Assembly (NCBI GenBank): GCA_028826165.1 | Contig: JAPDFW010000059.1 | Location: forward strand, 1,054,001-1,118,000 | Direction: 5' to 3' | DNA: 64,000 nt | From: Anaeramoeba ignava BMAN | Lineage: Eukaryota > Protista > Anaeramoebae | Part shown: positions 2,879 to 40,914 of the stretch, piece by piece | Position numbering within the stretch: position 1 is the stretch's first letter | How the letters are laid out: each line of letters opens with the position of its first letter | The notes under the pieces: model-generated | Told to the model about the DNA's origin: nothing | Seen by the model: only the letters and a program-made list of their open reading frames with translations | Databases searched by the model: none | Position numbers and translations under genes: made by a program

Positions 2879-3687
2879 TTTAAAATCAATTTAAATTTTT
2901 GTTTTTTTTGGAATTAAAAAGAAAAAAAAAATGATTTAAATTTTTTATTAAAAAAAAAAGCAACAAAAAAAAAATTGGAAATAGATTTAATTTAATATCT
3001 AATTTGGAAATTAATTTGGAATATAATTTAATCTTTAATTTTATTATTAAATTAATAATTTAATGTTTTAGATTTAAATATTTTCTTATTTAAATATTAA
3101 ACATATAAATATAAAAATTGAAAATAGATTTAATTTAATATTTAATTTGGAAATTAATTTGGAATATAATTTAATCTTTAATTTTATTATTAAATTAATA
3201 ATTTAATGTTTTAGATTTAAATATTTTCTTATTTAAATATTAAACATATAAATATAAAAATTGAAAATAGATTTAATTTAATATTTAATTTATAAATTAA
3301 TTTTATTTTATATTTTATTAATATTTCTTTGTTTGAAATAATATTAAATTATTCTCAATAATTAAATAAAATTTAAAAGAAAGTTAAAACATTTTTAATA
3401 AAGATAAAAATGGGTTTTTGAATAGTATTTAATAATAAATTATAATAGATTTATTCATAATTTTATATTTTATAAAATGATTTAAATTTGATTATTATTA
3501 AAATTCAATTTTTATCTTTATTAAAATATTTTCATTTTCTTTTCCAAATTTTTAATAATATTTTTAAATTAAAATTAAATTGATTTAAAATTGGATTGGT
3601 TTCTTATTTATTGATTTAAAGAATTTAATTTGATTGAAAGTAAATGAAAATAAAATTGGATTTTGAAAAAAAATAAGAAAATTGAAA

Positions 3688-6675
3688 TTAAATGAAATAA
3701 GTCTCAAGTTCATCAACAACCCGTTTATCATAAGAACCAGCTAAATACCTAAAAGCTTCATTTGTTTTATATTTAATTCCATTAGGTAGATTGTAACTAT
3801 GACCAAAATTTGAGTATCTAGGTTGTAAATTAGAATTTAACTCAATATCAGCTATAAATATTTTAATAAAGATAAATATTTCATTTAATTAATATTAATA
3901 AAAAATATTTAATAAATAATTATTTACCATCTATTTTAATAAAGATAAATATTTAATTTTAATAATAATGATTTAATTTGAAATTTATTTCATTTTAAAT
4001 TGAAATAATATTATTATTTATTATAGTAATATTTTGGATTATTTATTAATTTAATTTTAATTATATTAATAAAATATTTACGATCTATTTTAATAAAGAT
4101 AAATATTTAATTTAAATTGAAATAATGATAATATTATTTATTATATTAATTATTTACAAACTATTTTAATAAAAGATAAATAAATAATTATTAATAATAA
4201 TATTAGCTATAACAAAGATTATTTACAATCTATTTTAATAAAGATAAATAATTAATTTTAATAATATTATTAATTATAATAATAAATATTTACCATCTAT
4301 TTTAATAAAGATAAATAATTAATTTTGATAATAATTATTATAATAAATATTTACCATCTATTTTAATAAAGATAAATAATTATCATTAATAATAATAATT
4401 ATTATTATTATAAATATTTACCATCTATTTTAATAAAAAGATAGATAATTAATTATTAATAATAATTATTATAATAAATATTTACCAACTATTTTAATAA
4501 AGATAAATAATTATCATTAATAATAATATTGATTATATTAATATTTTTGGATTATTAATTTAATTTTAATTATAATAAAAATATTTACAATCTATTTTAA
4601 TAAAGATAATCAATTAATTTTAATAATAATTTAATTTGAAATTTATTTTATTTTAAATTGAAATAATAATTTTAGTTATAGTAATTGTTATTTACTTGCT
4701 ATATTAATAGATAAATAATTAATTTTTAATAATAATTATAATAATAAATATTTACCCCCTATTTTAATAAAGATAAATAATTAATTTTGATAATAATAAT
4801 AATTATTTATTATATTAATATTTTGGATTATTTATTAATTTAATTTTAATTATAATAATTGTTATTTACAAGCTATTTTAAGAAAGATAATTAAATTTGA
4901 TAATAATTATTATTTATTAATTTAATTTAAAATTTAATTTATTTTAAATTGAAATAATATTATTATTTATTATATTAATATTTTTGGATTATTTATTAAT
5001 TTAATTTTAATTATATTAATAAAATATTTACGATCTATTTTAATAAAGATAAATATTTAATTTTAATAATAATATTTTGGATTATTTATTAAATAAAAAT
5101 TATTTACCATCTATTTTAATAAAGATAAATAATTAATTTTAATAATTTATTTATTAATTTAATTTTAGTTATAATAATAATTATTATTATTTACCATCTA
5201 TTTTAACAAAAATAATTGATGTGAGTTTGAATGATAATTATTAATAATTATAATACAAATTATTTACAATCTATTTTAATAATAATAAAGATAAATAAAT
5301 AATAATAATAATTTATTAAATAATAATATATATTATATTTACATCCAAAACTCGGTCCAAGATTTGATTTATAATAAATTGCATATTTTTCTTGACCTTG
5401 TTTAATTGCAAACTTCTCTGACTTTCTATCTCCTTTATCATTTCTTAATGAAAAAATAAATGAATTTGTATCTTTAATAAATCCATAATTTCCTTTATCT
5501 TCACTCCATTTTGATTTATTATTTGTAAATCCAACTTGAGTAAATCCTCCAAAAATAAAATTATCTTTGGTTTTGATAATAATTAATGTTTTTCCTTTGT
5601 TATCACAAATTGAATGCCATTTTTGAGAAGAAAATCCATCTCTTTTTGCTGAATATCCTTTTTTCATTTTGTAAAAGAATTTATTATCATTTATCCATTC
5701 TTGTAATTTATTAATATGCTCTTCTTCTTTTTGAATAATTTCTGAATCGAATTTAAATCTTGTTTGGAAATTTAATGAATTTTGATTTTGATTTTCTTTT
5801 TGGATAAATTGAGTTAATTCTTTTTCATTTTCTTCAAGTTTTTGGAATTGAATTAATTTTTGTGAAATTTGTTTTGGAATTAAATCTTCTTCTATAGTTT
5901 CTGTAAGTTCTTTGGATGTAAAATCAATAAATCTGATTTTATCAATAATATTTGAAATTTGATTTTGTAATTTTTCTTTTTCTTCTTTTTCAAGTTTTTG
6001 ATTTTCTTTTTCTTGATTAATATTTGATTTATGTTTTCCCCATTTTATTATTGATTGGAAATTTTCAAATCCATTTAAGAGAATTTTATCATTTGATAAT
6101 ATTGAATTTAAATGATTTTCTTCAAGTTCAAGAAAAAATGGAGTTTTGATAAATTTTGTAAAATGTTCTAAAATAAATTGATAAGAAGAATCCAATAAAT
6201 GATTTAAGTTCATTGATTCAGATAATTTAAGAACATCAACAATAGTTTCAATTTGTAAATTCTTTTTGATAAAATTTGAACAAATTTCAATTAATTCATC
6301 AATTAAATATTTTGATGAAAAAATTAAAATTTGAATTGCATTTTCTAAATTAATTTCAATCTTTCCTGAATAAAGATAATTCAAAATTGAAGATAGAATT
6401 GAACTTGAAACATCTTTTAGAATTAATTTATTTTCTTGATATTCTTTCATTTTGGATTTAAAAAGAGATTTAAAATATTCACTTCTTGAAGAAAGAATTG
6501 ATTTATGAGTTTTAAATGAAGTTTGGTTTTGTTCACAAATTATTTCAAAATCAAAATAACTTTCTTCTTCTTCTTCTTCTTCTTTTTTTGATTTTTGGTT
6601 TTGATTTTGATTTTGATTTTGAAATAAATTTTTTAAATCATTTGAAAGTTTTTCTAAATTTGAATAAGTTTCCAT
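3688..6675 (-). CDS. BTB-BACK-TLDc domain protein, copy 1
   Basis: Exon 6675-5343 has BTB (FKTHKSILSSRSEYF) and TLDc (RDGFSSQKWHSICDNKGKTL, FGGFT, GPSFG). Last exon 3851-3688 is (S)DIELNSNL...YLAGSYDKRVVDELETYFI*. The intervening region holds 16 candidate 3-nt microexons. Confidence 0.9.
3852..5342 (-). other. Array of 16 candidate 3-nt microexons (copy 1)
   Basis: Repeated minus-strand TTTATTAAAATAG-NNN-GTAAAT; triplets start (plus coordinates) at 5268, 5195, 5108, 5032, 4870, 4756, 4696, 4589, 4486, 4422, 4355, 4294, 4227, 4158, 4082, 3928. Confidence 0.8.
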
Positions 6676-7304
6676 TTTTAAAATAAAATGAAAAATGAAA
6701 AATGAAAAAAAAAAAAAATTTTTTGCTTTTTTTAAAATTAAATAAATCAATAATAATTTAATTTGAAATTAATTTTATTTTATATATTTTATTAATATTT
6801 CTTTGTTTAAAATAATATTAAATTATTCTCAATAATTAAATAAAATTAATAAAATATTTTAATTAATTTATTTCAAAAATTAAATCAATAATAATAAACA
6901 CTCCAATTTATAAATTAATTTTATTTTATATTTTATTAATATTTCTTTGTTTGAAATAATATTAAATTATTCTCAATAATTAAATAAAATTGAAAAGAGA
7001 GTTAAAACATTTTTAATAAAGATAAAAATGGGTTTTGAATAGTATTTAATAATAAATTATAATAGATTTATTCATAATTTTATATTTTATAAAATGATTT
7101 AAATTTGATTATTATTAAAATTCAATTTTTATCTTTATTAAAATATTTTCATTTTCTTTTCCAAATTTTTAATAATATTTTTAAATTAAAATTAAATTGG
7201 TTTAAAATTGGATTGGTTTCTTATTTATTGATTTAAAGAATTTAATTTGATTGAAAGTAAATGAAAATAAAATTGGATTTTGAAAAAAAATAAGAAAATT
7301 GAAA

Positions 7305-10300
7305 TTAAATGAAATAAGTCTCAAGTTCATCAACAACCCATTTATTATAAGAACCAGCTAAATAATTACGAGCTCCATCTGTTCCGTATTTAATTCCATT
7401 AGGTAGATTATAACTATGACCAAAATTTGAGTAACCAGATTTTAAATCAGAATCTAACTGAATATCAGCTATAAATATTTTAATAAAGATAAATAATTAA
7501 TTTTAATTTTAATTTTAATTTTAATATTAATTTTGATAAATATTTACGATCTATTTTAATAAAATTAATTTTAATAATAATGATATTATTTAGAATTTAT
7601 TTTATTTTAAATTGAAATAATAATATTATTTACAATCTATTTTAATATTTAATTTTGATAATAAATTAATTTAAAATTTATTTTATTTTAAATTGAAATG
7701 ATAATATTATTTATTATATTAATATTTTGGATTATTTATTAATTTAATTTTAATTATAATAAAAATATTTACTATCTATTTTAATAAAGATAAATAATTA
7801 ATTTTAATAATAATTAATTTAGAATTTATTTTATTTTTAAATTGAAATAATAATATTATTTATTATATTAATATTTTGGATTATTTATTAAATTTAATTT
7901 TTAGTTATAATAAATATTTATTTACCAACTTTAATAAAGATAATTAATTAATTTTAATAATAATTTAATTTAAAAATTTAAATAAAAATCATTTACCAAC
8001 TATTTTAATAAAATTAATTTTAATAATAATAATAATAATATTTAGAATTTATTTTATTTTAAATTGAAATAATAATATTTTTACAATCTATTTTAATAAA
8101 ATTAATTTTAATAATAATAATGATATTATTTAGAATTTATTTTATTTTAAATTGAAATAATAATATTATTTACAATCTATTTTAATATTTAATTTTGATA
8201 ATAAATTAATTTAAAATTTATTTTATTTTTAAATTGAAATGATAATATTATTTATTATATTAATATTATGGATTATTTATTAATTTAATTTTTAATTATA
8301 ATAAAATATTTACCATCTATTTTAATAAAGATAAATAATTAATTTTAATAATAATTAATTTAGAATTTATTTTATTTTAAATTGAAATAATAATATTATT
8401 TATTATATTAATATTTTGGATTATTTATTAAATTTAATTTTAGTTATAATAAATATTTATTTACCAACTTTAATAAAGATAATTAATCAATTTGAATAAT
8501 AATTTAATTTAAATTTAATTTTTATTTAATTTTTAAATTAAAAAATGATGATATTATTTATTACAATGTAACTTTCATTAGAATAAATATTATTTACCAT
8601 CTATTTTAATAAAGATAAATAATTAATTTTAATATTATTATTTATTATATTAATATTTTTGGATTATTTATTAATTTAAAATTATTTACTATCTATTTTA
8701 ATAAAGATAAATATTTATTATATTAATATTTTTGGATTATTTATTAATTATAATTATGATTTACAAGCTATTTTAATAAAGATAAATATTTAATCACAAT
8801 AATAATTAATAATAATTTAATTTAAAATTTAATTTTATTTTTAAATTTAAATAATAATATTATTGATTATATTAATATTTTTGGATTATTTATTAATTTA
8901 ATTTTAATTATAATAATAAAAATTATTTACAAGCTATTTTAATAAAGATAAATAATTAATTTTAATAATATTATTTTATTATATTAATATTTTTGGATTA
9001 GTTGTTAATTTAATTATAATTAATAATAAAATATTATTTACAATCTATTTTAATAAATATAAATAATAATAATTTTAATATTATTATTTATTATATTAAT
9101 ATTTTTGGATTATTTATTAATTTAATTTTAATTATAATAATAAAATTATTTACCAACTATTTTAATAAAGATAAATAATTTATTATATTAATATTTTGGA
9201 TTATTTATTAATTATAATTATGATTTACAAGCTATTTTAATAAAGATAAATATTTAATCACAATAATAATTAATAATAATTTAATTTTAAAATTTAATTT
9301 TATTTTAAATTTAAATAATAATATTATTGATTATATTAATATTTTTGGGTTATTTATTAATTTAATTTTAGTTATAATAATAAAAATTATTTACAAACTA
9401 TTTTAATAAAGATAAATAATTAATTTTAATATTATTATTTATTATATTAATATTTTGGATTATTTATTAATTTAATTATAATTAATAATAAAATATTATT
9501 TACAATCTATTTTAATAAATATAAATAATTAATTTTTAATATTATTATTGATTATATTAATATTTTTGGATTATTTATTAATTTAATTTTAGTTATAATA
9601 ATAAAATATTTACGATCTGTTTTAATAAAGATAATTAATAATAATAATATTTATTATATTAATATTTTGGATTATTTATTAAATAATTATTTACCATCTA
9701 TTTTAATAAAGATAAATAATTAATTTTATTAATTTATTTATTAATTCAATTTTAGTTATAATAATAAATATTTACCCCCTATTTTAACAAAGATAAATAA
9801 TTAATTTTAATAATATTAATAAAAATATTTATTAAATAATTATTTACAATCTATTTTAATAAAGATAAATAATTAATTTTGATAATAATTAATAATAATT
9901 TAAATTTTATTTTATTTTAAATTGAAATAATAATATTATTTAATTTAATTTTAATTATAATAATTGTTATTTACAAGCTATTTTAACAAAGATAAATAAT
10001 TAATTTTAATATTATTATTGATTATATTAATATTTTTGGATTGTTTATTAATTTAATTTTAGTTATAATAATTATAATAATAATAATAAATATTTACGAT
10101 CTATTTTAATAAAGATAATTAATAATAATAATATTTTGGCTTATTTATTAAATAAAAATTATTTACTTGCTATATTAATAAAGATAATTAATTTTGATAA
10201 TAATATTATTATTTATTATATTAATATTTTGGATTATTTATTTAATAATATTTAAAAATTATCTATTTTAACAAAGATAAATAATTAATTTTAATATTAT

Positions 10301-12067
10301 TATTTATTATATTAATATTTTTGGATTATTTATTAATTTAATTTTAGTTATAATAATAAATTATTTACAAGCTATTTTTTAATAAATATTATTAATTATA
10401 TTAATATTTTTGGATTATTTATTAATTTAATTTTAATTATATTAATAAAATATTTTACGATCTATTTTAATAAAGATAAATATTTAATTTTAATAATAAT
10501 ATTTTTGGATTATTTATTAAATAAAAATTATTTACTATCTATTTTAATAAAGATAAATAATTAATTTTAATAATTTATTTATTAATTTAATTATTATTTA
10601 CCATCTATTTTAACAAAAATAATTGATGTGAGTTTGAATGATAATTATTAATAATTATAATACAAATTATTTACAATCTATTTTAATAATAATATTGATA
10701 ATAAATAATAATAATTTATTAAATAATAATATATATTATATTTACATCCAAAACTCGGTCCAAGATTTGATTTATAATAAATTGCATATTTTTCTTGACC
10801 TTGTTTAATTGTAAACTTCTCTGACTTTCTATCTCCTTTATCATTTCTTAATGAAAAAATAAATGAATTTGTATCTTTAATAAATCCATAGTCTTCTTCA
10901 TCTTCACTCCATTTTGATTTATCATTTGTAAATCCAACTGAAGTAAATCCTCCAAAAATAAAATTATCTTTGGTTTTGATAATAATTAATGTTTTTCCTT
11001 TGTTATCACAAATTGAATGCCATTTTTGAGAAGAAAATCCATCTCTTTTTGCTGAATATCCTTTTTTCATTTTGTAAAAGAATTTATTATCATTTATCCA
11101 TTCTTGTAATTTATTAATATGCTCTTCTTCTTTTTGAATAATTTCTGAATCGAATTTAAATCTTATTTGGAAATTTAATGAATTTTGATTTTTGATTTTC
11201 TTTTTGGATAAATTGAGTTAATTCTTTTTCATTTTCTTCAAGTTTTTGGAATTGAATTAATTTTTGTGAAATTTGTTTTGGAATTAAATCTTCTTTCAAA
11301 GTATCTGTAAGTTCTTGTTTTGAGAAATCAATAAATCTGATTTTATCAATAAAATTTGAAATTTGATTTTGTAATTTTTCTTTTTCTTCTTTTTCAAGTT
11401 TTTGATTTTCTTTTTCTTGATTAATATTTGATTTATGTTTTCCCCATTTTATTATTGATTGGAAATTTTCAAATCCATTTAAGAGAATTTTATCATTTGA
11501 TAATATTGAATTTAAATGATTTTCTTCAAGTTCAAGAAAAAATGGAGTTTTGATAAATTTTGTAAAATGTTCTAAAATAAATTGATAAGAAGAATCCAAT
11601 AAATGGTTTAAGTTCATTGATTCAGATAATTTAAGAATATCAACAATAGTTTCAATTTGAAAATTCTTTTTAATAAAATTTAAACAAATTTCAATTAATT
11701 CATCAATTAAATATTTTGATGAAAAAATTAAAATTTGAATTGCATTTTCTAAATTAATTTCAATTTTTCCTGAATAAAGATAATTCAAAATTGAAGATAG
11801 AATTGAACTTGAAACATCTTTTAAAATTAATTTATTTTCTTGATATTCTTTCATTTTGGATTTAAAAAGAGATTTAAAATATTCACTTCTTGAAGAAAGA
11901 ATTGATTTATGAGTTTTAAATGAAGTTTGGTTTTGTTCACAAATTATTTCAAAATCAAAATAACTTTCTTCTTCTTCTTCTTCTTTTTTGTTTTGGTTTT
12001 GATTTTGATTTTGAAATAAATTTTTTAAATCATTTGAAAGTTTTTCTAAATTTGAATAAGTTTCCAT
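7305..12067 (-). CDS. BTB-BACK-TLDc domain protein, copy 2 (apparent 1-nt frameshift near 11190)
   Basis: Exon 12067-10746 is split into two ORFs by an extra base in a T-run. Last exon 7468-7305. Very similar to copy 1. Confidence 0.85.
7469..10745 (-). other. Array of 30 candidate 3-nt microexons (copy 2)
   Basis: Same AG-NNN-GT cassette, from 10675 down to 7548. One degenerate unit lacking a donor near 10261. Confidence 0.8.
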
Positions 12068-12856
12068 TTTTGAAATGAAAAATGAAAAATGAAAAATGAA
12101 AAATGAAAAAAAATTTATTTTTTGCTTTTTTTAAAATTAAATAAATCAATAATAATAAACACTCCAATTTGAAATTAATTCTATTTTATATATTTTATTA
12201 ATATTTCTTTGTTTAAAATAATATAAAATTATTCTCAATAATTAAATAAAATTAATAAAATATTTTAATTAATTTATTTCAAAAATTAAATCAATAATAA
12301 TAAAAACTCCAGTTTGAAATTAATTTTATTTTATATTTTATTAATATTTCTTTGTTTAAATTAATATAAAATTATTCTCAATAATTTAAATAAAATTAAT
12401 AAAATATTTTAATTAATTTATTTCAAAAATTAAATCAATAATAATAAACACTCCAATTTAAAAATTAATTTTATTTTATATTTTATTAATATTTCTTTTT
12501 GTTTGAAATAATATTAAATTATTCTCAATAATTAAATAAAATTGAAAAGAAAGTTAAAACATTTTTAATAAAGATAAAAATGGGTTTTGAATAGTATTTA
12601 ATAATAAGTTATAATAGATTTATTCATAATTTTATATTTTATAAAATGATTTAAATTTGATTATTATTAAAATTCAATTTTTATCTTTATTAAAATATTT
12701 TCATTTTCTTTTCCAAAATTTTAATAATATTTTTAAATTAAAATTAAATTGGTTTAAAATTGGATTGGTTTCTTATTTATTGATTTAAAGAATTTAATTT
12801 GATTGAAAGTAAATGAAAATAAAATTGAATTTTGAAAAAAAATAAGAAATTTGAAA

Positions 12857-15800
12857 TTAAATGAAATAAGTCTCAAGTTCATCAACAACCCATTTATCAT
12901 AAGAACCAGCTAAATACCTAAAAGCTTCATTTGTTTTATATTTAATTTCATTAGGTAGATTGTAACTATGACCAAAATTTGAGTATCTAGGTTGTAAATT
13001 AGAATTTAACTCAATATCAGCTATAAATATTTTAATAAAGATAAATAATTAACTTTAATTTTAATTTTAATTTTAATTTTAATTTTGATAAATATTTACG
13101 ATCTATTTTAATAAATATAATTAATTAATTTTAATAAATAATATTGATTATTTATTATATTGATATTTTGGATTATTTATTAAATAAAAATTATTTACAA
13201 GCTAATTTTAATAAGGATAAATATTTAATTTTAATAACAATAATAATAATTTAATTTTGAATTGAAATTTATTTTCTTAATATTTTGGATTTTTATTAAA
13301 TAAAAATTATTTACAATCTATTTTAATAAATATAATTAATTAATTTTAATAAATAATATTGATTATTTATTATATTGATATTTTGGATTATTTATTAAAT
13401 AAAAATTATTTACAAGCTAATTTTAATAAAGATTAATATTTAATTTTAATAACAACAATAATAATTTAATTTTGAATTGAAATTTATTTTCTTAATATTT
13501 TGGATTATTTATTAATTTAATTTTAGTTATAATAAATATTTATTTACAATCTATTTTAATAAAGATAAGTAATTTTAAATTAAAATGATGATATTATTTA
13601 TTAATGTAATTTTCATTATAATAAAAATTATTTACGAGCTATTTTAATAAAGATAATTAATTTTAATAATAATAATTTAATTTGAAATTTATTTCATTTT
13701 TAAATTGAAATAATATTATTATTGATTATATTAATATTATGGGCTATTTATTAAATAATTATGATTTACGAGCTATTTCAAGAAAGATAAATATTTAATT
13801 TTGATAATAATTAATAATAATTTAATTTAAAATTAATTTTATTTTAAATTGAAATAATAATATTATTTATTATATTAGTATTTTGGATTATTTATTAATT
13901 TAATTTTAGTTATAATAAATATTTATTTACCAACTATTTTTAATAAAGATAAATATTTAATTTTAATTATAATAATAAAATATTTACGACCTATTTTTAA
14001 TAAAGATAAATATTTCATTTAATTAATATTAATAAAAATATTTAATAAATAATTATTTACCATCTATTTTAATAAATATAAATAATTAATTTTGATAATA
14101 ATTAATAATAATTTAATTTGAAATTTATTTCATTTTAAATTGAAATAATATTATTATTGATTATATTAATATTTTGGATTATTTATTAATTTAATTTTAA
14201 TTATATTAATAAAAATATTTACGATCTATTTTAATAAAGATAAATATTTAATTTAAAATTTAATTTAAATTGAAATAATGATAATATTATTTATTATATT
14301 AATTATTTACAAACTATTTTAATAAAGATAAATATTTAATTTTTAATAATAATATTAGCTATAACAAAAGATTATTTACAATCTATTTTAATAAAGATAA
14401 ATAATAATAATAATAATATTAATTATAATAATAAATATTTACCATCTATTTTAATAAAGATAAATAATTAATTTTGATAATAATTATTATAATAAATATT
14501 TACCATCTATTTTAATAAAGATAAATAATTATCAATAATAATTATTATTATTATTATAATAAATATTTACCATCTATTTTAATAAAGATAGATAATTAAT
14601 TAATAATAATAATTATTATAATAAATATTTACCAACTATTTTAATAAAGATAAATAATTATCATTAATAATAATATTGATTATATTAATATTTTTGGATT
14701 ATTAATTTAATTTTAATTATAATAAAAAAAATATTTACAATCTATTTTAATAAAGATAATCAATTAATTTTAATAATAATTTAATTTGAAATTTATTTTA
14801 TTTTTAAATTGAAATAATAATTTTAGTTATAGTAATTGTTATTTACTTGCTATATTAATAGATAAATAATTAATTTTAATAATAATTATTATAATAAATA
14901 TTTACCATCTATTTTAATAAATATAAATAATTAATTTTGATAATAATAATAAATATTTATTATATTAATATTTTGGATTATTTATTAATTTAATTTTTAA
15001 TTATAATAATTGTTATTTACAAGCTATTTTAAGAAAGATAATTAAATTTGATAATAATTATTATTTATTAATTTAATTTAAAATTTAATTTATTTTAAAT
15101 TGAAATAATATTATTATTTATTAATTTAATTTTAATTATATTAATAAAATATTTACGATCTATTTTAATAAAGATAAATATTTAATTTTTTAATAATATT
15201 TTGGATTATTTATTAAATAAAAATTATTTACCCTCTATTTTAATAAAGATAAATATTTAATTTTAATAATTTATTTATTAATTTAATTTTAGTTATAATA
15301 ATAATAATTATTATTTACCCCCTATTTTAACAAAGATAATTGATGTGAGTTTGAATGATAATTATTAATAATTATATACAAATTATTTACAATCTATTTT
15401 AATAATAATAAAGATAAATAAATAAATAATAATAATAATTTATTAAATAATAATATATATTATATTTACATCCAAAACTCGGTCCAAGATTTGATTTATA
15501 ATAAATTGCATATTTTTCTTGACCTTGTTTAATTGTAAATTTCTCTGACTTTCTATCTCCTTTATCATTTCTTAATGAAAAAATAAATGAATTTGTATCT
15601 TTAATAAATCCATAATTTCCTTTATCTTCACTCCATTTTGATTTATTATTTGTAAATCCAACTGAAGTAAATCCTCCAAAAATAAAATTATCTTTGGTTT
15701 TGATAATAATTAATGTTTTTCCTTTGTTATCACAAATTGAATGCCATTTTTGAGAATCAAATCCATCTCTTTTTGCTGAATATCCTTTTTTCATTTTGTA

Positions 15801-16781
15801 AAAGAATTTATTATCATTTATCCATTCTTGTAATTTATTAATATACTCTTCTTCTTCTTGAATAATTTCTGAATCGAATTTAAATCTTATTTGGAAATTT
15901 AATGAATTTTGATTTTTATTTTCTTCTTGGATAAATTGAGTTAATTCTTTTTCATTTTCTTCAAGTTTTTGGAATTGAATTAATTTTTGTGAAATTTGTT
16001 TTGGAATTAAATCTTCTTTCAAAGTATCTGCAAGTTCTTTGGATGTAAAATCAATAAATCTGATTTTATCAATAAAATTTGAAATTTGATTTTGTAATTG
16101 TTCTTTTTCTTCTTTTTCAAGTTTTTGATTTTCTTTTTCTTGATTAATATTTGATTTATGTTTTCCCCATTTTATTATTGATTGGAAAATTTCAAATTCA
16201 TTTAAGAGAATTTTATCATTTGATAATATTGAATTTAAATGATTTTCTTCAAGTTCAAGAAAAAATGGAGTTTTGATAAATTTTGTAAAATGTTCTAAAA
16301 TAAATTGATAAGAAGAATCTAATAAATGGTTTAAGTTCATTGATTCAGATAATTTAAGAATATCAACAATAGTTTCAATTTGAAAATTCTTTTTGATAAA
16401 ATTTGAACAAATTTCAAATAATTCATCAATTAAATATTTTGATGAAAAAATTAAAATTTCAATTGCATTTTCTAAATTAATTTCAATTTTTCCTGAATAA
16501 AGATAATTCAAAATTGAAGATAGAATTGAACTTGAAACATCTTTTAGAATTAATTTATTTTCTTGATATTCTTTCATTTTGGATTTAAAAAGAGATTTAA
16601 AATATTCACTTCTTGAAGAAAGAATTGATTTATGAGTTTTAAATGAAGTTTGATTTTGTTCACAAATTATTTCAAAATCAAAATAACTTTCTTCTTCTTC
16701 TTTTTTTTTGTTTTGGTTTTGATTTTGAAATAAATTTTTTAAATCATTTGAAAGTTTTTCTAAATTTGAATAAGTTTCCAT
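12857..16781 (-). CDS. BTB-BACK-TLDc domain protein, copy 3
   Basis: Intact exon 16781-15470 and last exon 13020-12857. Confidence 0.9.
13021..15469 (-). other. Array of 25 candidate 3-nt microexons (copy 3)
   Basis: AG-NNN-GT cassettes from 15391 down to 13100. Confidence 0.8.
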
Positions 16782-16854
16782 TTTTGAAATAAAATGAAAA
16801 ATGAAAAATGAAAAATGAAAAAAAATTTATTTTTTGCTTTTTTTAAAATTAAAT

Positions 16855-17540
16855 AAATCAATAATAATAAACACTCCAATTTGAAATTAATTCTATTTTA
16901 TATATTTTATTAATATTTCTTTGTTTAAAATAATATAAAATTATTCTTAATAATTAAATAAAATTAATAAAATATTTTAATTAATTTATTTCAAAAATTA
17001 AATCAATAATAATAAACACTCCAGTTTGAAATTAATTTTATTTTATATTTTATTAATATTTCTTTGTTTAAATTAATATAAAATTATTCTCAATAATTAA
17101 ATAAAATTAATAAAATATTTTAATTAATTTATTTCAAAAATTAAATCAATAATAATAAAAACTCCAATTTGAAATTAATTCTATTTTTTATATTTTATTA
17201 ATATTTCTTTTATTTAAATTAATATAAAATTATTCTTAATAATTAAATAAAATTAATAAAATATTTTAATTAATTTATTTCAAAAATTAAATCAATAATA
17301 ATAAAAACTCAATTTAAAATTAATTCTATTTTATGTTTTATTAATATTTCTTTGTTTGAAATAATATTAAATTATTCTCAATAATTAAATAAAATTAATA
17401 AAATATTTTTAATTAATTTATTTCAAAAATTAAATCAATAATAATAAACACTCCAATTTGAAATTAATTTTATTTTATATTTTATTAATATTTCTTTGTT
17501 TGAAATAATATTAAATTATTCTCAATAATTAAATAAAATT
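16855..17540. repeat. ~147-bp tandem repeat between BTB-TLDc copies (about 5 units; about 2 units at 6740-6990 and 3 at 12140-12540)
   Basis: Recurring aaatcaataataataaacactccaatttgaaattaatt...tttctttgttt...attctcaataatt unit. Confidence 0.8.
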
Positions 17541-17853
17541 GAAAAGAAAGTTAAAACATTTTTAATAAAGATAAAAATAAGTTTTGAATAGTATTTAATA
17601 ATAAGTTATAATAGATTTATTCATAATTTTATATTTTATAAAATGATTTAAATTTGATTATTATTAAAATTCAATTTTTATCTTTATTAAAATATTTTCA
17701 TTTTCTTTTCCAAATTTTTAATAATATTTTTAAATTAAAATTAAATTGGTTTAAAATTGGATTGGTTTCTTATTTATTGATTTAAAGAATTTAATTTGAT
17801 TGAAAGTAAATGAAAATAAAATTGAATTTTGAAAAAAAATAAGAAATTTGAAA

Positions 17854-20566
17854 TTAAATGAAATAAGTCTCAAGTTCATCAACAACCCATTTATCATAAG
17901 AACCAGCTAAATACCTAAAAGCTTCATTTGTTTCATATTTAATTCCATTAGGTAGATTGTAACTATGACCAAAATTTGAGTGACCAGATTGTAAATTAGA
18001 ATTTAACTCAATATCAGCTATAAATATTTTAATAAAGATAAATAATTAACTTTAATTTTAATTTTAATTTTGATAAATATTTACCATCTATTTTAATAAA
18101 TATAATTAATTAATTTTAATAAATAATAATAATTATTTATTAAATAAAAATTATTTACAATCTATTTTAATAAAGATAAATATTTCATTTAATTAATATT
18201 TTGGATTATTTATTTAATAATATTTACTATCTATTTTAATAAATATAAATAATATTTATTATATTAATATTATGGATTATTCATTAAATTTAATTTTAAT
18301 TATAATAATAAATATTTATTTACCAACTATTTTAATAATTATAATAAATTAATTTAATTTTAATTATAATAATAAATATTTATTTACAAGCTAATTTTAA
18401 TAAAGATAAATAATTCATTTTCAATAATATTATTTGTTATATTAATATTTTGGATTATTCATTAATTGAAATTATTTACCAACTATTTCAATAAAGATAA
18501 ATAATTCATTTCAATAATATTATTATTTATTAATTAAAATTATTTACAAACTATTTTTAATAAAGATAAATATTTAATTTAATTTTAAATGTAATAAAAA
18601 TTATTTACTATCTGTTTTTAATGAAGATAAATATTTAATTTAATTTTAGTTATAATAATATTGATTATTTACGAGCTATTTTAATAAATATAAATATTTA
18701 ATTTAATAATAATATTGATTATATTAATATTTTGGATTATTCATTAAATTTAATTTAATTTTAATTATAATAATAAAGATTATTTACCATCTATTTTAAT
18801 AAAGATAAATATTTAATTTAATTTAATAATAATATTTTGGATTATTCATTAATTTAATTTTAATTATAATAATAAATATTTACCAACTATTTCAATAAAG
18901 ATAATAAATTAATTTAATTATATTATAATTATAATAATAAAATATTTATTTACCAACTATTTCAATAAAGATAAGTACTTAATTTTAATAATATTAAATA
19001 TTTATTTACACTCTATTTTAATAAAGATAAATATTTAATTTTAATAATTTATTTATTAATTTAATTTTAGTTATAATAATAATAATTATTATTTACCATC
19101 TATTTTAACAAAAATAATTGATGTGAGTTTGAATGATAATTATTAATAATTATATACAAATTATTTACAATCTATTTTAATAATAATAAAGATAAATAAA
19201 TAATAATAATTTATTAAATAATAATATATATTATATTTACATCCAAAACTCGGTCCAAGACTTGATTTATAATAAATTGCATATTTTTCTTGACCTTGTT
19301 TAATTGTAAACTTCTCTGACTTTCTATCTCCTTTATCATTTCTTAATGAAAAAATAAATGAATTTGTATCTTTAATAAATCCATAATATCCTTCATCTTC
19401 ACTCCATTTTGATTTATTATTTGTAAATCCAACTTGAGTAAATCCTCCAAAAATAAAATTATCTTTGGTTTTGATAATAATTAATGTTTTTCCTTTGTTA
19501 TCACAAATTGAATGCCATTTTTGAGAAGAAAATCCATCTCTTTTTGCTGAATATCCTTTTTTCATTTTAGAAAAGAATTTATTATCATTTATCCATTCTT
19601 GTAATTTATTAATATGCTCTTTTTCTTGAATAATTTCTGAATCGAATTTAAATCTTATTTGGAAATTTAATGAATTTTGATTTTGATTTTCTTCTTGAAT
19701 AAATTGAGTTAATTCTTTTTCATTTTCTTCAAGTTTTTGGAATTGAATTAATTTTTGTGAAATTTGTTTTGGAATTAAATCTTCTTCTATAGTTTCTGCA
19801 AGTTCTTTGGATGTAAAATCAATAAATCTGATTTTATCAATAAAATTTGAAATTTGATTTTGTAATTGTTCTTTTTCTTCTTTTTCAAGTTTTTGATTTT
19901 CTTTTTCTTGATTAATATTTAATTTATGTTTTCCCCATTTTATTATTGATTGGAAAAGTTCAAATTCATTTAAGAGAATTTTATCATTTGATAATATTGA
20001 ATTTAAATGATTTTCTTCAAGTTCAAGAAAAAATGAAGTTTTGATAAATTTTGTAAAATGTTCTAAAATAAATTGATAAGAAGAATCCAATAAATGGTTT
20101 AAGTTCATTGATTCAGATATTTTAAGAATATCAATAATAGTTTCAATTTGAAAATTCTTTTTGATAAAATTTGAACAAATTTCAATTAATTCATCAATTA
20201 AATATTTTGATGAAAAAATTAAAATTTCAATTGCATTTTCTAAATTAATTTCAATCTTTCCTGAATAAAGATAATTCAAAATTGAAGATATAATTGAACT
20301 TGAAACATCTTTTAGAATTAATTTATTTTCTTGATATTCTTTCATTTTGGATTTAAAAAGAGATTTAAAATATTCACTTCTTGAAGAAAGAATTGATTTA
20401 TGAGTTTTAAATGAAGTTTGATTTTGTTCACAAATTATTTCAAAATCAAAATAACTTTCTTCTTCTTCTTCTTCTTTTGATTTTTTGATTTTGAGTTTTG
20501 ATTTTGATTTTGAAATAAATTTTTTAAATCATTTGAAAGTTTTTCTAAATTTGAATAAGTTTCCAT
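17854..20566 (-). CDS. BTB-BACK-TLDc domain protein, copy 4 (apparent frameshift in the low-complexity tract ~20470-20500)
   Basis: METYSNLEK start at 20566, exon ends 19241, last exon 18017-17854. Confidence 0.85.
18018..19240 (-). other. Array of 15 candidate 3-nt microexons (copy 4)
   Basis: AG-NNN-GT cassettes from 19169 down to 18085. Confidence 0.8.
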
Positions 20567-27300: not shown

Positions 27301-30300
27301 TGAAGGCTGTAGAAGATACCAAAGTTTTTGTAGTGTAAGTTGACCTGTTCTTTGTTGGTATTCAAAAGTTGTTACCAACGAATGATAATCCTAATTTTAT
27401 GAAGAAAAATTTTAATTTAATTTTAAAATTTAAAAATTTAAAAATTATTTGATTTCTACTTGAAGTAATTGATTAATTGCTGCGCAAAAAGCATGATTTG
27501 TTAATCCATATTGAAAATCAAAACGAGAATCTACAAATTCAGAAATTATATAAAAATTTGTGCAAAGTGGAAGTATTTGATGGAGAAGCGAAGATAAAGA
27601 AATATCTAGCGTATTATCAAATATAAAAATGGGTTGTTCTGGATTTGAAGGTTGTTTGACTTTTATATATTTTCCTTCGATTCCCTTTTTTTTTCAATTT
27701 AAAAATTAATTCAATTTAAATATTTAATTCAAAAATTAATTCAATTTAAAAAATATTCAATTCAAAAATATTCAATTCAAAAAATAATTCAATTCAAAAA
27801 TATTTAATTTAAAAATCAATTCAAAAAATATTCAATTTAAAAATTAATTCAATTCAAAAATTAATTCAAAAAATAATTCAATTAAAAAATCAATTTAAAA
27901 ATTAATTCAATTCAAAAATATTTAATTTAAAAATTAATTCAAAAATATTCAATTCAAAAATATTCAATTTAAAAATCAATTCAAAAAATATTCAATTCAA
28001 TAATTCAATTTAAAAATTAATTCAAAAATATTTAATTTAAAAATTAATTCAATTTAAAAATATGAGTGATTCTGTTGCAAAAAAAATCAATAAAAAAAAA
28101 AGCCTCTTGAGCCTCAAAATTAAAATATCAAATAATCAATTTATTGAGTGATTTTTTTTATATTGTTCCAAAAAATTCTCATCAAATTTATTTACTTTTG
28201 ATTTTATTAATAAAGGAATTTTTTTAAAAAAGGAATTTAAATTTCATATATGTCTTCTTTTTTAAATCTCTTAAAAAAATAAAAGAGAAATTTTAGACTT
28301 CTTTTTTTAAAATAACTTTTTTTGAATCATATTTTAATCAATCAAAATCAAAAAGATCAGATTTTTCATTTTGCTTTTCTTCTCCCTTTCAATTTGTTTT
28401 TATCGATAATTTAATTACAAAATATCTTTACATATTAGACATTTGTATTTTGATTGAAGAATCAATTTTTCTTTGGTTTTTTTCTTTTTTTGGAAATAAG
28501 ATCAAGAAGATTTTTCCTTTTCTTTCTTTTTTTTAATTAAATCAATGTCCACTTTTTCCTTTCAATTTCTTTTTTTCTTCAAATAGTTTAAAGAATCAAT
28601 TTTTCTTTGGTTTTTCTTTTTGAAATAAGATCAAGAAGATTTTTTTCCTTTTCTTTCTTTTTTTTAATTAAATCAATGTCCACTTTTTTGAGGATTTCAA
28701 AAGGAATTTTTTGATAAAATCTCAATTCATTTTTTCTTTTAAATGAAGCTTTTTTTTATTCGTTTTCAAGGAAATTTTTGTGTGTTTGATGCTGAAAAGA
28801 TCCTAAACTTTAAAACCTTAATTAAAGATGTGAAAGATAACTTCAACATTCGACAAAAGATTCAAGCATTCACCTATCTCTTTCAAGATAAAACTGTTCG
28901 TATTTCAAACAATTCACAACTTGTAATCTTCCTAAATTGTGTTAAAGAAAAAGTTCTTCTAATAACTTCAGAGGAAATTCCTATTTTGAATGTTCAAATC
29001 ACTATTTCAAAAAATGGAAAGAAAGTGCCAATGAGTATTCAAAAAATGATCGATCAGGATCCATTTCTTTCATATAATTTAGATACACAAAAAGTTTTTT
29101 GTTCTTCTTGTGATAAGGAATTGAAAAATTTAAATTCATGGAAGCTAAAGAGACATTTAAATTGTGAACATCATCGTTTTAAGATTCCATTTTACCTAAA
29201 ATCTCAAACAAAATCAAAAGAATGGGTTTTCACAAATCATGAAAAAAATATCCTTCGAATTTTAGATCATTTAGAAACATTTACAACGATTGATTTTTAC
29301 AGCAGAAAAGATATACCTGTTTTCCGCACAAGTTTGACAAAGAAAAGACTTTTTAATCAAATACAGGATAAAGGAAATGATCTTAAATATGGGACTTTCT
29401 GCTCACTTCTTCAAAAGTATTTTTCAATTCATTCTGCAACAGCTTTTTTTTTCCAGTGTCCAAAATGTTCTAATCCAATCATGAAAAAAAGGCAGAATCA
29501 CCAAAGAAAAGTTCTTGAAATGAGAAATTTATACAAATCGGAAATTCAACTTCTTGATCAAATTATTTTATTCTTGGACTTTGCAGTCAATTTTCAAGAG
29601 TATCGAGATAATTGGGAAACACAAGAATTCTATCATAAAAAATCATGGGTGATCTTCAATATTACTATTCAGTTTGAAAAACAGTTGTTCTATTTCGATT
29701 ATATTTCAGAGGATCAAACTAAAGTAAGTTTAAAAATTGAATTCCTTTTTGATTCTATTAATTTTCTATTTCTCTTATAGGATTCCCAATTTGTTCTTCA
29801 AAGTTTTCAAGATTTTCGATATAAATTCCATGAATGGCAACATAAAAGAAATCTATTAAACATATCAAAACTAAGGATTTTTTCTGATAATGGAGGACAC
29901 ATTAAAAATAACTTTGTTCTGGGGATGATTTTTGATGCTTTTAGTTCGCAATTTTTAGATATTAAGGTAATTTTCTTTCTCAGAAATCATGCTAAACATA
30001 TGTCTGATCGTCATTTTGGTAACATATCAAGGAATAAGGCAAATTTTGGGGATATTACAACTATTAATTTACTTTTTGATTATTTATCTCAACTTAGTAA
30101 CACAACACCAATTATTTTAAATGTGAATAGAGCACTCAAATTTCTTTACAAGAATCCAATTGCAAAAATTCAAAAATCACACATTTTTATTTTCTTAAAA
30201 GGAAACTTGAAAACTGCAAGAATGCCAAACACCAATTTTCGAAAAAGAAGAATACCTATAATTGAACAAATTTTTCAAGAGAAAGAATTTGGAATTAAAC

Positions 30301-32644
30301 AAAATTCAGCATTAATTCAGGAGAATTATTCTATTCCTTTCTTTAATACTCAAATGACAAATTCCAAAAATGAAAAGGTGATTCCAAATGAAACACAAAA
30401 ATTTCATTCGCAAAGAGAAAAGAAGATGAAGGAAATGAATCATATGAATGGAAATCTACGAAGTTCTTCCAGAAAACATCAACAAATCAAGAGAAAAATT
30501 GAATTTGAAGAAAAAGAAGAAATCAAAAATTTGCGCATTTCAAAATTTCAAGATAATCTCCCAAAACAAAAGAATTTTACATCATCAATATCCATTTGCA
30601 AAACAGGAGTAAGAAAATTCTTCTTTTATTATTTTTTTCTTTTTGATTTTCTCATTTTAATTTTTGATTAGAATTTAAGAAAGATTCCAAATTCACACAA
30701 TTCATGCTATATCGCTTCCATCATTCAAGTGCTTTTAAGAACTTCTGTAATTGAACTATTAGGTTTAGGTGATATTTCTGAAACTTTGAGCGATATTTTA
30801 CAATCTTCAGAAGAATCGATTAATATAACTCCACTAAGAAAGGTAATAGGAGAACATGTGACTCAATTTTCCAACACTAATGAACAAGATATACATGAAT
30901 TTTTTGTTTCCTTGATGGATTTAATATCAAATGAGAATATTTCAGATTTCAATGTTCCATATGATCTTCTTTATCAAGAATTTGATATTCACAATCGAGC
31001 TATAATAAATGATTTTCGCATTCGTATTGTGCAAAAAGTGACATGTAAGAAATGTAAAAGATTTACTTATTCCTTTCCTCAAGAAACAAGTCTTGTGATT
31101 AGCTTTCCAATTTTGAACGGAGAAATTAGCATTTCTTCAATGCTCGATAATTATTTCGCTGAAAAGGATTTAGATTTCTCTCAACATTATCACTGTGAAA
31201 ATTGTGACCAAAAAGTAGAAAGCTCCATTAAATTGTCTCTTTTGACTATTCCTAAATATTTGGTTATTTTTTTCAAGAGAACTTATTATGATTCCTTGAC
31301 TCAATCTACAACAAGAATTGGAACCAAAATTCAATGTGAAGAAAAGATCAATGTCAAATCTTTCATGTTTCAGAGTTGTCCTAATCAAGAAACTGAAATG
31401 AAATTACTTGGATCAATACACCATATTGGAAATGCCAATGAAGGTCATTATTGGACTGAAATCTTAGAAACCGAAACTAGTTCAAATTTTTTTGGAATAA
31501 GTGATGCTCATATATTTCCCGTGAATCCTTTTAGAACAAAAGATACTTTTACAATGATGATTTTTACAAGAGAAGATTAAGAAAAAATAATCACTCTTTC
31601 TATTCCTTTTTTCTTTGACAAGAATCTAATTCATTTTTCTTTTTTTTTTGATTGATTTTTGATTGATTTTTTTTGATTGATTTTTTTTGATTCAATTTTT
31701 CTAATTCTCAAAGAAATAAACCTTTATCGTGCCTCAGGAAGCACCAAAATTTGAGGCTTTTATCGAGATTTCTTGTTCAATTTTAATTAAAAAAGGGAAA
31801 AAAAATAAACAAAAAAAAATTTTTCACATCAGCCTCAAATCACTCATATTCAATTCAATAAATTAATTCAATTTAAAAATCAATTTAAAAATATTTAATT
31901 CAAAAATTAATTCAATTTAAAAAATATTTAATTTAAAAAATCAATTCAAAAATTAATTCAAAAATATTTAATTCAAAAATTAATTTAAAAATATTCAATT
32001 CAAAAATTAATTCAATTTTAAAAATATTCAATTCAAAAATTAATTCAATTTAAAAATTAATTCAATTTAAAAATCAATTCAATTCAAAAATTAATTCAAT
32101 TTAAAAATATTCAATTCAAAAATTAATTCAATTTAAAAAATATTCTTCATTTACAATCAAACAATATAATAAATCTTCAATAATTAATATTTCTTGTACT
32201 TCAACTGGAAAAACATCTAATTCTAATGGTTCTGCTTCTGGTTCATTCAGAAATAAATGTTTTCCTGTAAGAAAAGGTCTTTCAGAAACCCAATCAGGAA
32301 AAATTGGTTTTCTTAAATTATCATCTTTTTGTTGAAATTTTTTCTCATTTTTTAATTGCATTGAATAAAGTTCCTCTAAATTTTCATCATTTTTTTTTAA
32401 ATTGAATTATTAAATTGATTGTTTTAAATTAAAATTCTTGTTCCATTATTTGAATACTTTGTAATTCTTTATGATCAGTTGATGTTGAAAGTCGAAAATA
32501 ATCAATATCTTCAATTTTATTTTTCTGATTTTCAAATGAATCATTTTCTGAATATTGAAGTTTTTGTAATAAATGATTTTCAAGTTTTTCTAAAAGATTT
32601 TTATTCTTGATAATTAATGAAAAAACTCCAAAAATCACAGCGTT

Positions 32645-35220: not shown

Positions 35221-35590
35221 AATTTATATTTAAAAAATTAATCAATTTTTTTTCCCTTTTATTCTTTTTTTTTTCTCATTTATCCTTTTTTTTGAGAATT
35301 TTCGTTTGCTAAATCAACTTAGATCGTTTTATATTTTGATTTAAATTAAATTAATTAAAAAATAAATTTATAATTAATAGATTAAAAGGATAATAAATTA
35401 ATTAAAAAAAAAAATTTTTTTTTAAATTTTTTACTTTAAAAAAATTTTAATTTGTAAAAAAGAACCATTTTTTCATTCAATTGTTTTGTTTATTCAAGTT
35501 TTTTAATTTTTAATTTTTAATTTTAATTTTAATTTTTACTTTTAACTTTTCTTCTTCTTTTTTTTTGTGGAACAAGAACAACAAAAAAAA

Positions 35591-36205
35591 ATGTCAAATT
35601 CAAATTTTGGAATAGAAACAAATTTTGAAATGAATTCATTTGATGAAGAATCATTACCATTACCATTTCAAAGTGATTTACTTCTCTCTTCTTTGGATTT
35701 CCTTGGTTATGATTTTTTGGATTCAAAATCAATTGATTTTAATAACATTGATTCAGTCCAACTTACAACAGCAACAACAATAATAAATCCTTCAACAGAT
35801 GATCCAAAAACATCAACAGACTTAAAGGAAAAAATAGAAGAATTAATTCAAAATCGAAAGAAAAAAAGAAATCAAACAAAAACAGCTTTTCGACTTCAAT
35901 GTTTTTCTCAAATTTCACCAAAGGAATTTGTTTATATTCGTAGAAATAAAAAGAGAATTCAAATTGGTAAAAATTTTTCACTTAAAAAACATGGAATGGA
36001 AATTAGTGATAAAATTGTTATTACAAGTAAATTAATTGATCTTGAAACTCAAATTAACAAAAGAAATAAAAATCTTATTAGAAGAAGTTATCGGAATGCG
36101 TTTAAACCAAAAGGATTCATAATTGCAAAACCTCATAAAAGAGGAGATTTAGTTTTTAAATTTGTAGGAAAACACAAAAAACAAAACAGAAATATCAGAA
36201 ATTGA
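35591..36205 (+). CDS. Uncharacterised protein, acidic N-terminus and basic conserved C-terminal domain (putative DNA-binding family member 1)
   Basis: Shares FRLQCFSQI...RRSYRNAFKPKGF...RGDLVF with three other ORFs in the window. Confidence 0.75.
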   Translation: MSNSNFGIETNFEMNSFDEESLPLPFQSDLLLSSLDFLGYDFLDSKSIDFNNIDSVQLTTATTIINPSTDDPKTSTDLKEKIEELIQNRKKKRNQTKTAFRLQCFSQISPKEFVYIRRNKKRIQIGKNFSLKKHGMEISDKIVITSKLIDLETQINKRNKNLIRRSYRNAFKPKGFIIAKPHKRGDLVFKFVGKHKKQNRNIRN

Positions 36206-37418
36206 AAAAACAAAAACAGAAAACAATTTCCAATTTAATTTTTCTTTGATTTTAATTTTAATTTCCAATTTAATTTTTCTTTGATTTTGAATTAAATAAA
36301 TTAAAAAAAGGAAAAAAGTGGAATAAATTTTTTATTTAAAATATAAGAAATAAATTGAAATTTAATTAATAATTTAATTTAAAATTTATTAATAATTTAT
36401 TTTAATTATTATTTATATTTATATTTATTATTAATCCCTTTTTTAAAATTGAAAGAAATTAAAGAAAAAAGTGGAATAAATTATAATAAATGAAATTTAA
36501 TTAATAATTTTAAATTTAAAATTTATTTAATTTATTATTATTTATATTTATATTTATTATTAATCTCTTTTTAAAATTGAAAAATTGTAATAAGAAATAA
36601 ATTCAAATTTAATTAATAATTTAATTTAAAATTTCTTTATAATTTAATTATAATTATTTATTATTAATCTCTTTTTAAAATCTCTTTTTAAAATTGAAAA
36701 TAAAAAGAAAAAGTGGAATAAATTGTAATAAGAAATAAATTGAAATTTAATTAATAATTTAATTTAAAATATCTTAATAATTTAATTTAATTATTATTTA
36801 TATTTATATTTATTATTAATCTCTTTTTCAAAATTGAAAATTAAAAAGAAAAAAGTGGAATAAATTATAATAATTTAAAATTTATTAAATAAATTAAATT
36901 TAAATTTAATAATCTTTTAATTAAAAAGAAAAAAAGTGGAATAAATTATAATAAGAAATAAATTGAAATTTAATTAATAATTTAATTTAAAATATCTTAA
37001 TAATTTAATTTAATTATTATTTAATTATATTTATTATTAAATTTTATTAAATTTATATTTAAAAAATTAATCAATTTTTTTTCCCTTTTATTCTTTTTTT
37101 TTTTCTCATTTATCCTTTTTTTTGAGAATTTTCGTTTGCTAAATCAACTTAGATCGTTTTATATTTTGATTTAAATTAAATTAATTAAAAAATAAATTTA
37201 TAATTAATAGATTAAAAGGATAATTAATTAATTAAAAAAAAAAATTTTTTTTTAAATTTTTTACTTTAAAAAAATTTAATTTGTAAAAAAGAACCATTTT
37301 TTCATTCAATTGTTTTGTTTATTCAAGTTTTTTAATTTTTAATTTTAATTTTAATTTTAATTTTTACTTTTAACTTTTCTTCTTCTTTTTTTTTGTGGAA
37401 CAAGAACAACAAAAAAAA

Positions 37419-38390
37419 ATGTCAAATTCAAATTTTGGAATAGAAACAAATTTTGAAATGAATTCATTTGATGAAGAATCATTACCATTACCATTTCAAA
37501 GTGATTTACTTCTCTCTTCTTTGGATTTCCTTGATTATGCTTTTTTGGATTCTCATTTTCATTCCATTTTGTTTACTAATCTTGATCGCAATTATTATTC
37601 AAATTTTGGTAATAATTTCGATTTTGATCTTGATTCTCTAAGTCCCTTTTCTATTAATAATGATTTCCCTGATTTTTTTCAACCGATTAATCAACCACGA
37701 ATTTTTACATTTGAATTAGATAAAAATTCTTTTTTTGATTCCCCAATGAATGATAACTCAGAATATCAAGAATTTTTCTCAATTTTTCCCAATTTCACAA
37801 CAAATGAAGAGTCTAAGTTATTCAATTCGAACCCCATTTCATTTCAACAAAAAGAACAAAAAATGGATCTAAAAGAAGAAGAGCAAAAAATGGATTTAAA
37901 AGAAGAACAAAAAATGGATTCAAAAGAAGAACAACAAACATCAACAGACTTAAAGGAAAAAATAGAAGAATTAATTCAAAATCGAAAGAAAAAAAGAAAT
38001 CAAACAAAAACAACTTTTCGACTTCAATGTTTTTCTCAAATTTCACCAAAGGAATTTGTTTATATTCGTAGAAATAAAAAGAGAATTCAAATTGGTAAAA
38101 ATTTTTCACTTAAAAAACATGGAATGGAAATTGGTGATAAAATTGTTATTACAAGTAAATTAATTAATCTTGAAACTCAAATTACTAAAAGAAGTGTAGA
38201 TCTTATTAAAAGAAGTTATCGGAATGCGTTTAAACCAAAAGGATTCATAATTAGTGAAAGATATTCAAGAGGAGATTTGATTTTTGAATTTGAAGGAAAA
38301 CCTAAAAGTAAAACAGAAAGAAAACCTAAAAGGCAAACAAAAAGAAAACCTAAAAGTAAAACAAAAAGAAAATCAAACAATTTAACTTAA
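37419..38390 (+). CDS. Same family, member 2
   Basis: 5' flank, N-terminus and most of the C-terminal domain are nearly identical to member 1. The middle is a different D/F/N-rich segment. Confidence 0.75.
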   Translation: MSNSNFGIETNFEMNSFDEESLPLPFQSDLLLSSLDFLDYAFLDSHFHSILFTNLDRNYYSNFGNNFDFDLDSLSPFSINNDFPDFFQPINQPRIFTFELDKNSFFDSPMNDNSEYQEFFSIFPNFTTNEESKLFNSNPISFQQKEQKMDLKEEEQKMDLKEEQKMDSKEEQQTSTDLKEKIEELIQNRKKKRNQTKTTFRLQCFSQISPKEFVYIRRNKKRIQIGKNFSLKKHGMEIGDKIVITSKLINLETQITKRSVDLIKRSYRNAFKPKGFIISERYSRGDLIFEFEGKPKSKTERKPKRQTKRKPKSKTKRKSNNLT

Positions 38391-40910: not shown

Positions 40911-40914
40911 TTTT

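Follow-up and report, generated by a model that had tools for sequence, protein, structure and literature searches.

In a 64,000-nucleotide (nt) stretch of contig JAPDFW010000059.1 from Anaeramoeba ignava, hereafter the window, four tandem minus-strand BTB-BACK-TLDc genes (G1-G4, at 3.7-20.6 kb) are each interrupted at one and the same TLDc codon by an array of short introns that leave three bases between successive acceptor and donor sites. Comparison of these units within the window and across the genome supports the view that the triplets are likely to evolve as coding sequence, not as neutrally decaying repeats, and we propose below that the units would be real three-base exons. Selection for a triplet alphabet unable to make stop codons in any combination, a trait suggested by a preliminary description of the arrays, is not supported by the triplet composition.

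A pattern search for AG, three bases and GTAAAT returned 86 minus-strand array units, spread over 3928-19171 in blocks of 16, 30, 25 and 15, and reproduced the count, the 13 triplet types and the absence of AA- and GA-starting triplets previously described; one extra match, at 7372, lies within a coding exon and is not an array unit. The units are far beyond chance occurrence: a 19-base flank pattern matches exactly at 346 places in the genome, and the reversed control at one. The four genes are laid out as follows:

G1 exon 1, 5343..6675, minus strand: BTB-BACK and most of TLDc, stopping 1 base past the GPSFG Gly codon (phase 1); open frame.
G1 array, 3852..5342, minus strand: 17 short GT-AG introns with 16 three-base units between them (5270 to 3928).
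G1 last exon, 3688..3851, minus strand: 164 nt, the C-terminal part of TLDc; starts with CT, then a conserved Asp codon.
G2 exon 1, 10746..12067, minus strand: +1 frameshift in an A-run near 11193.
G2 array, 7469..10745, minus strand: 30 three-base units (10677 to 7548), plus one donor-less unit at about 10262-10260.
G2 last exon, 7305..7468, minus strand.
G3 exon 1, 15470..16781, minus strand: open frame.
G3 array, 13021..15469, minus strand: 25 units (15393 to 13100), the first 16 orthologous to the G1 array.
G3 AG-starting unit, 15232..15234, minus strand: preceded by a G-ending unit, with which it gives Glu in order; a junction to T would create a stop.
G3 last exon, 12857..13020, minus strand.
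G4 exon 1, 19241..20566, minus strand: out of frame, with two +1 changes in an N-terminal repeat near 20490.
G4 array, 18018..19240, minus strand: 15 units (19171 to 18085).
G4 AG-starting unit, 19010..19012, minus strand: preceded by a G-ending unit.
G4 last exon, 17854..18017, minus strand.

Exon 1 is about 98% identical among G1-G4, and in G1 it scores above the cut-off for BTB (PF00651, 82 bits), BACK (PF07707, 42 bits) and TLD (PF07534, 59 bits versus a curated cut-off of 24.5, from exon 1 alone). The predicted protein, with BTB followed by BACK, is about 500 residues long, and the array units would add 15-30 codons to it. In all four genes the TLDc domain breaks off one base past the GPSFG Gly codon, and a 164-nt last exon supplies the remainder; this places the junction in phase 1, as had been claimed. 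Each codon is therefore made of the final base of one unit and the first two bases of the next, so that triplet position 1 is codon position 2, triplet position 3 is codon position 1, and triplet position 2 is the wobble base. It follows from the phase-1 junctions that skipping a unit would change the identity of a residue, again in agreement with the preliminary description, which was also right that the two AG-starting units (15232 and 19010) both follow G-ending units and give Glu in order.

Introns in the window measure 53-199 nt (median 84), and those of paralogs about 180 nt. Among 244 units of the locally examined arrays, the spacer between AG and GT is 3 nt in 236 and 4 nt in eight, with no spacers of 0-2 nt, and only about five junctions have a broken AG or GT versus 260 intact. 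The 86 window units are not independent of one another; they fall into 58-65 clusters by flank identity, and G1 and G3 share 16 orthologous units.

The triplets behave unlike the introns that surround them. Over 150 paralog units, column heterozygosity is 0.64, 0.28 and 0.70 at the three triplet positions versus an intron mean of 0.041, a 7- to 17-fold excess over the surrounding cloned introns, and the least variable position is the wobble base. Nearest-neighbour units have introns 1.1% apart and differ at 69, 31 and 62% of their three triplet positions, a comparison in which intron homogenisation blurs true ancestry; conversion would homogenise the triplets too unless something kept them different. 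Orthologous units compared between G1 and G3 show differences at 5 of 48 triplet bases and at 23 of 1331 intron bases (P=0.002). GC content is 28% in triplets and 2-5% in introns, and G stands at triplet position 2 in 48 units where 0.14 would be expected from the T columns of the introns. Host codon usage fits phase 1 best (mean log-likelihood -3.67 versus -3.87 and -4.39), and a phase-2 reading of the arrays meets 66 stops. Read in order, the 245 loop codons give D 50 times, Y 41, N 24 and F 19. The aromatic and acidic residue set ascribed to the arrays is borne out, in that in-order residues are mostly D, Y, N, F, S, V, A, I, H and W; the bias toward Y, D, N and H is in part an inheritance from an AT-starting ancestor, and the D/Y/N/H excess comes entirely from AT-starting units. 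As to the coding selection proposed in the preliminary description, variability, GC content and G1/G3 divergence uphold the coding-like character of the triplets, and it is the stop-proof alphabet as a selected trait that finds no support.

In phase 1 the only starts able to create a stop are AA, AG and GA, and 84 of the 86 window units lack them. No subset of units can produce a stop in G1 or G2, and among subsets of one to three units in G3 and G4, 4-17% would do so. Most of this scarcity is accounted for by ancestry: at the T-to-A rate seen in intron T columns (1.8%), 0.98 AA or GA units would be expected in the window, and the probability of finding none is 0.37. A genome census of 362 exact-flank units, with a capture of about 80%, contains 29 stop-capable units (8.0%; 23 AG, 5 AA, 1 GA) where position frequencies predict 34.5 (P=0.19). 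Some eight of the 362 stand alone and are probably matches in other genes; leaving them out does not alter the outcome. The genome-wide triplet comparison thus gives a divided answer, with stop-capable triplets at their expected frequency, and triplets that do not drift in step with their introns. Within the census, A occupies triplet position 2 in 6 of 240 units where a stop is possible versus 6 of 122 where it is impossible, which we do not read as a depletion. GA starters number one versus 17 GG starters, a weak comparison since the GG class looks like one copied lineage. The last three bases of exon 1 in one paralog (L048, G000:C66:447185) are those of the common GG-class unit, and GG-class units may derive from an exon-1 end instead of from mutation. 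The locally examined subset holds 7 stop-capable units versus 15.8 expected, and it is a subset without the AG-rich arrays; the window itself is poor in such units (2 of 86 versus 27 of 304 elsewhere, P=0.04), its units being copies of each other. All 23 last exons examined start with NT(G/T) and so share the alphabet of the units, which is what duplication of a block of one intron plus three exon bases would produce. We therefore read the alphabet from its descent: T at position 2 is probably ancestral, and the near stop-proof alphabet is best seen as a local by-product of ancestry and of the wobble position.

Three other accounts of the triplet composition were rejected. A composition-only null, in which A-rich introns would yield many AA starts, fails because an exon start, rather than random intron DNA, is the likely source of the units. 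A general splicing ban on AA, AG and GA triplets is contradicted by a second array family that uses such triplets freely, and donor strength as the cause of G at triplet position 3 by the same family, which has only 2% G there. This second AG-NNN-GT family has a different acceptor flank and 226 exact matches in the genome, with loci outside the window at G000:C1:409300-412870, C57:593650-597560 and C87:271570-274720. By hand count, 45 of its first 100 listed units start with AA, AG or GA, T or A is the final base in 98, and stop triplets are absent, an alphabet that apparently fits phase 0; the C87 array reads mostly as hydrophobic residues. The second family shows that AA, AG and GA triplets are, to all appearances, compatible with the array architecture, and that the alphabet changes with the apparent phase.

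The window genes belong to a TLDc family of several hundred members in this genome (592 candidates), of which about 49 loci on many contigs carry an array of the same kind at the same codon. One paralog has a single 187-nt intron and no unit; others have one, two or three units, and the largest number is 30. In intronless paralogs and other annotated models the loop at the array site is variable, at 1-12 residues, and two annotated paralogs exceed 12 through internal duplications. In a TLDc domain model (pLDDT 96) taken from the public gene model P0163, which skips the array, the site is a hairpin turn between two short strands. The P0163 model has the TLDc fold, matching 6r82 with a Foldseek E value of 2e-7 and a TM score of 0.71, and the array site aligns with a short Gly-rich turn of Skywalker. 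Introner-type mobile introns occur as near-identical copies at many unrelated sites, bordered by terminal repeats or target duplications; the array introns are near-identical and, in every gene examined, stand in tandem at one and the same codon.

From these observations we propose a set of steps by which the arrays may have arisen and would work, which together we consider about as probable as all other accounts combined:

(i) The hairpin turn after GPxFG would at first have contained a single phase-1 intron. This intron, together with the first three bases of the next exon, would then have been repeatedly duplicated in tandem as one block in a subfamily of BTB-BACK-TLDc genes, creating units that are real 3-nt exons.

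(ii) The short introns would be removed one by one, with the units entering the mRNA mostly in genomic order, to give a predicted loop of 16-31 residues rich in D, Y, F and N in the four window genes.

(iii) Diversity would lie mainly between gene copies, with units gained or lost one codon at a time. The introns would be kept alike by duplication or conversion, while changes at codon positions 2 and 1, which are triplet positions 1 and 3, would be retained by selection; the wobble base, at triplet position 2, would mostly keep its ancestral T, with a nearly stop-proof alphabet as the by-product.

(iv) The loop may serve a Cullin-3-type ubiquitin ligase adaptor as its variable surface for target binding. 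BTB-BACK proteins act as Cullin-3 adaptors, and from the domain order we infer that the array-gene proteins would bind Cullin-3 as well.

The splicing of three-base units is itself a deduction from genomic sequence, as is their inclusion in order. Constitutive and combinatorial use make opposite predictions for AG-rich arrays behind a T-ending exon 1, such as those at G000:C114:12225 and C137:806331, namely an intact and a truncated product, respectively. Some arrays of this kind have 9 of 17 and 4 of 12 listed units starting with AG; read in order they contain one and no stops, while free skipping would often truncate their products. The in-order reading is free of stops in all four window arrays and in all but one of the other arrays examined in full. 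Where the upstream neighbour is known, 3 of 26 stop-capable units follow T versus 7.2 expected by within-array shuffling (P=0.039), in a hand-tallied test on units that are not independent. Taken together, the stop pattern appears to favour in-order inclusion modestly over free skipping.

Several observations weigh against in-order inclusion. The neighbour test is marginal, and the locally examined arrays alone give P=0.14. Inclusion of every unit would produce loops longer than the ordinary paralog loops of up to 12 residues. An in-order stop is present in each of three long, partly degenerate arrays elsewhere, and about 11 genes have four-base units, 13 in all, that would put the reading out of frame. 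EukProt contains transcript-derived proteins of the species, none of which clusters with the array-gene models looked up, and a search with the last exon for a transcript-derived protein gave no match. Exon 1 is frameshifted in two of the four window genes, by +1 changes in A-rich repeats at 11193 (G2) and 20488-20495 (G4), which may be assembly errors or mark pseudogenes; the NCBI models of G2 and G4 begin downstream of them. As for the four-base units, they sit in TLDc arrays on G000:C21, C24, C35, C56, C64, C73, C93, C112 and C114, all 13 include a homopolymer run, and units of 5-9 bases do not occur. Flanking intron runs carry +1 changes at 3-6%, the same rate as the four-base units, which may thus be noise of the 2017 nanopore assembly.

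Some of these difficulties would disappear if the array were a combinatorial cassette, the model implied by the preliminary description, from which transcripts draw a few units each in changing selections, so that a gene makes hundreds of loop variants, with the alphabet kept stop-free so that any selection works. One to five included units match the usual paralog loop length, three-unit subsets would yield 172-479 distinct peptides per gene, and skipping would tolerate the four-base units, the lost-donor units and the three in-order stops; G1 and G2, with no stop to be had from any subset, would suit such use. Splice sites 3 nt apart cannot be occupied simultaneously, which could favour skipping too. 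The census tells the other way, in that stop-capable starts are not depleted genome-wide, as do the AG-rich arrays and the truncations they would bring about, and we hold the cassette to be possible, with a chance clearly below even. Its fullest form, in which each gene splices a variable subset of one-codon, phase-shifted exons into a loop resembling antibody complementarity-determining region 3 (CDR3) on an intracellular ubiquitin-ligase adaptor and so provides a unicellular eukaryote with a somatic recognition repertoire, strikes us as rather doubtful. It is also conceivable that the array is a duplicated intron junction mostly removed as one long intron, or a decaying pseudogene segment, in which triplets drift from an ATN/NTG unit. 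In the NCBI models of G1, G2 and G4 the array is left out entirely and the TLDc domain is complete all the same (the G3 model takes the first array acceptor and then stops), an ancestral-unit model accounts for T at position 2 and G or T at position 3, and the G2 and G4 frameshifts, the degenerate arrays elsewhere and the lack of a matching transcript-derived protein fit decay. What makes this account unlikely is that the triplets are GC-rich and many times more variable than the introns, with G at position 2 far in excess of the number expected from intron T columns, that the splice signals are almost all intact, and that the alphabet shifts with apparent phase between the two families.

Two further accounts do without selection on protein. 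A targeted mutational or templating process that writes triplets at intron-copy junctions would explain the two-base switches in orthologous units 2 and 6 of G1 and G3, whose flanks are near-identical, and the lack of relation between triplet identity and flank relatedness. Such a process seems very improbable to us, given that composition tracks codon position in two phases, unlike the output of a blind writer, that short gene conversion among units explains the switches, and that no enzyme or template is seen within the window. An assembly artefact is suggested by the origin of the genome sequence, assembled from 2017 nanopore data with Nanopolish and Pilon (PMC11550330), and by the +1 homopolymer changes common in arrays. 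It is scarcely credible as a cause of about 49 loci scattered over many contigs, with the array invariably at one codon of one domain and with unit order shared by G1 and G3, and sequencing errors cannot hit three bases yet leave introns 98-99% alike.

We found no paper on these arrays, and none holding both Anaeramoeba and microexon; the main text of the genome paper mentions neither TLD nor BTB (PMC11550330). The nearest parallel is with the micro-exon genes (MEG) of Schistosoma mansoni, multi-gene families in which 10-20 very short exons, most with lengths divisible by three, stand in a row; automatic annotation misses them, and protein variation by alternative splicing has been proposed for them (PMC10526429). 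MEG exons are mostly 15 bp (range 6-81), their introns span 0.1-5 kb, and their products are secreted (PMC10526429). The arrays are similar as runs of many tiny units, 15-30 per window gene, here putative exons. Unlike those of MEG, the units are 3 nt long, lie between near-identical introns of 53-199 nt and share their codons across junctions, and the array would encode one loop of a folded BTB-BACK-TLDc protein with no apparent N-terminal signal peptide and no homology to MEG products. The arrays thus work somewhat like MEG and are not MEG, two defining features (long introns and a secreted protein built from micro-exons) being absent. Plant microexons of 1-15 nt demonstrate that exons of 3 nt or less can be spliced; they occur in all phases, are usually part of the main isoform and are commonly misannotated (PMC8831610). 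They have been described as single or few per gene and conserved, in contrast to the 15-30 hypervariable units between cloned introns seen here. With other TLDc proteins (Skywalker/TBC1D24 6r82, NCOA7, mEAK-7 and Oxr1) the array genes share PF07534 and the fold (TM 0.65-0.72); they differ in the fusion to BTB-BACK and in their several hundred copies. Dscam1 is a recognition protein whose tandemly duplicated alternative coding units offer a parallel; its exons encode half-domains and are used in a mutually exclusive manner, with one chosen per transcript by docking/selector pairing. An array unit is one codon long, and the order-dependent stop pattern argues against the choice of a single unit. 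At recursive (ratchet) splice sites AG is followed directly by GT, and no base is retained in the mRNA. They resemble the arrays in having near-adjacent acceptor and donor sites within a long intron, and were rejected as an explanation since the arrays keep three variable bases between AG and GT, with no 0-2-nt spacer among the 244 local units.

If spliced as we propose, the arrays would include up to 30 consecutive three-base exons, at the limit of exon definition by the spliceosome, and would illustrate how a binding loop can be extended, trimmed and rewritten codon by codon. Public gene models skip or misread the arrays, and the recognition surfaces of about 49 TLDc genes, together with those of the apparently phase-0 second family, would therefore be mis-annotated.

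The spacers between the gene copies contain tandem repeats of about 143-144 nt in varying copy number, detected with Tandem Repeats Finder (TRF) at 2970-3303 and 12142-12543 and visible by eye at about 16850-17530 too. Elsewhere in the window, a short minus-strand gene with one intron lies at 2517-2878; its product resembles, as we presume, bacterial hydrogenase-associated ACT-type regulators, with lateral transfer a possible origin. On the plus strand, 28743-31580 holds three open reading frames (ORFs), the last of which we take to resemble a USP-type deubiquitinase. Four plus-strand ORFs within 35567-47475 (at 35567, 37395, 39774 and 47035) form a small tandem family; all have in common a basic, unnamed C-terminal domain of some 100 residues, preceded by acidic low-complexity regions. 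Two adjacent plus-strand ORFs at 56808-60027 are probably one frameshifted gene, presumably for a surface protein that combines short repeats with fibronectin-like domains and a hydrophobic stretch at the C terminus.

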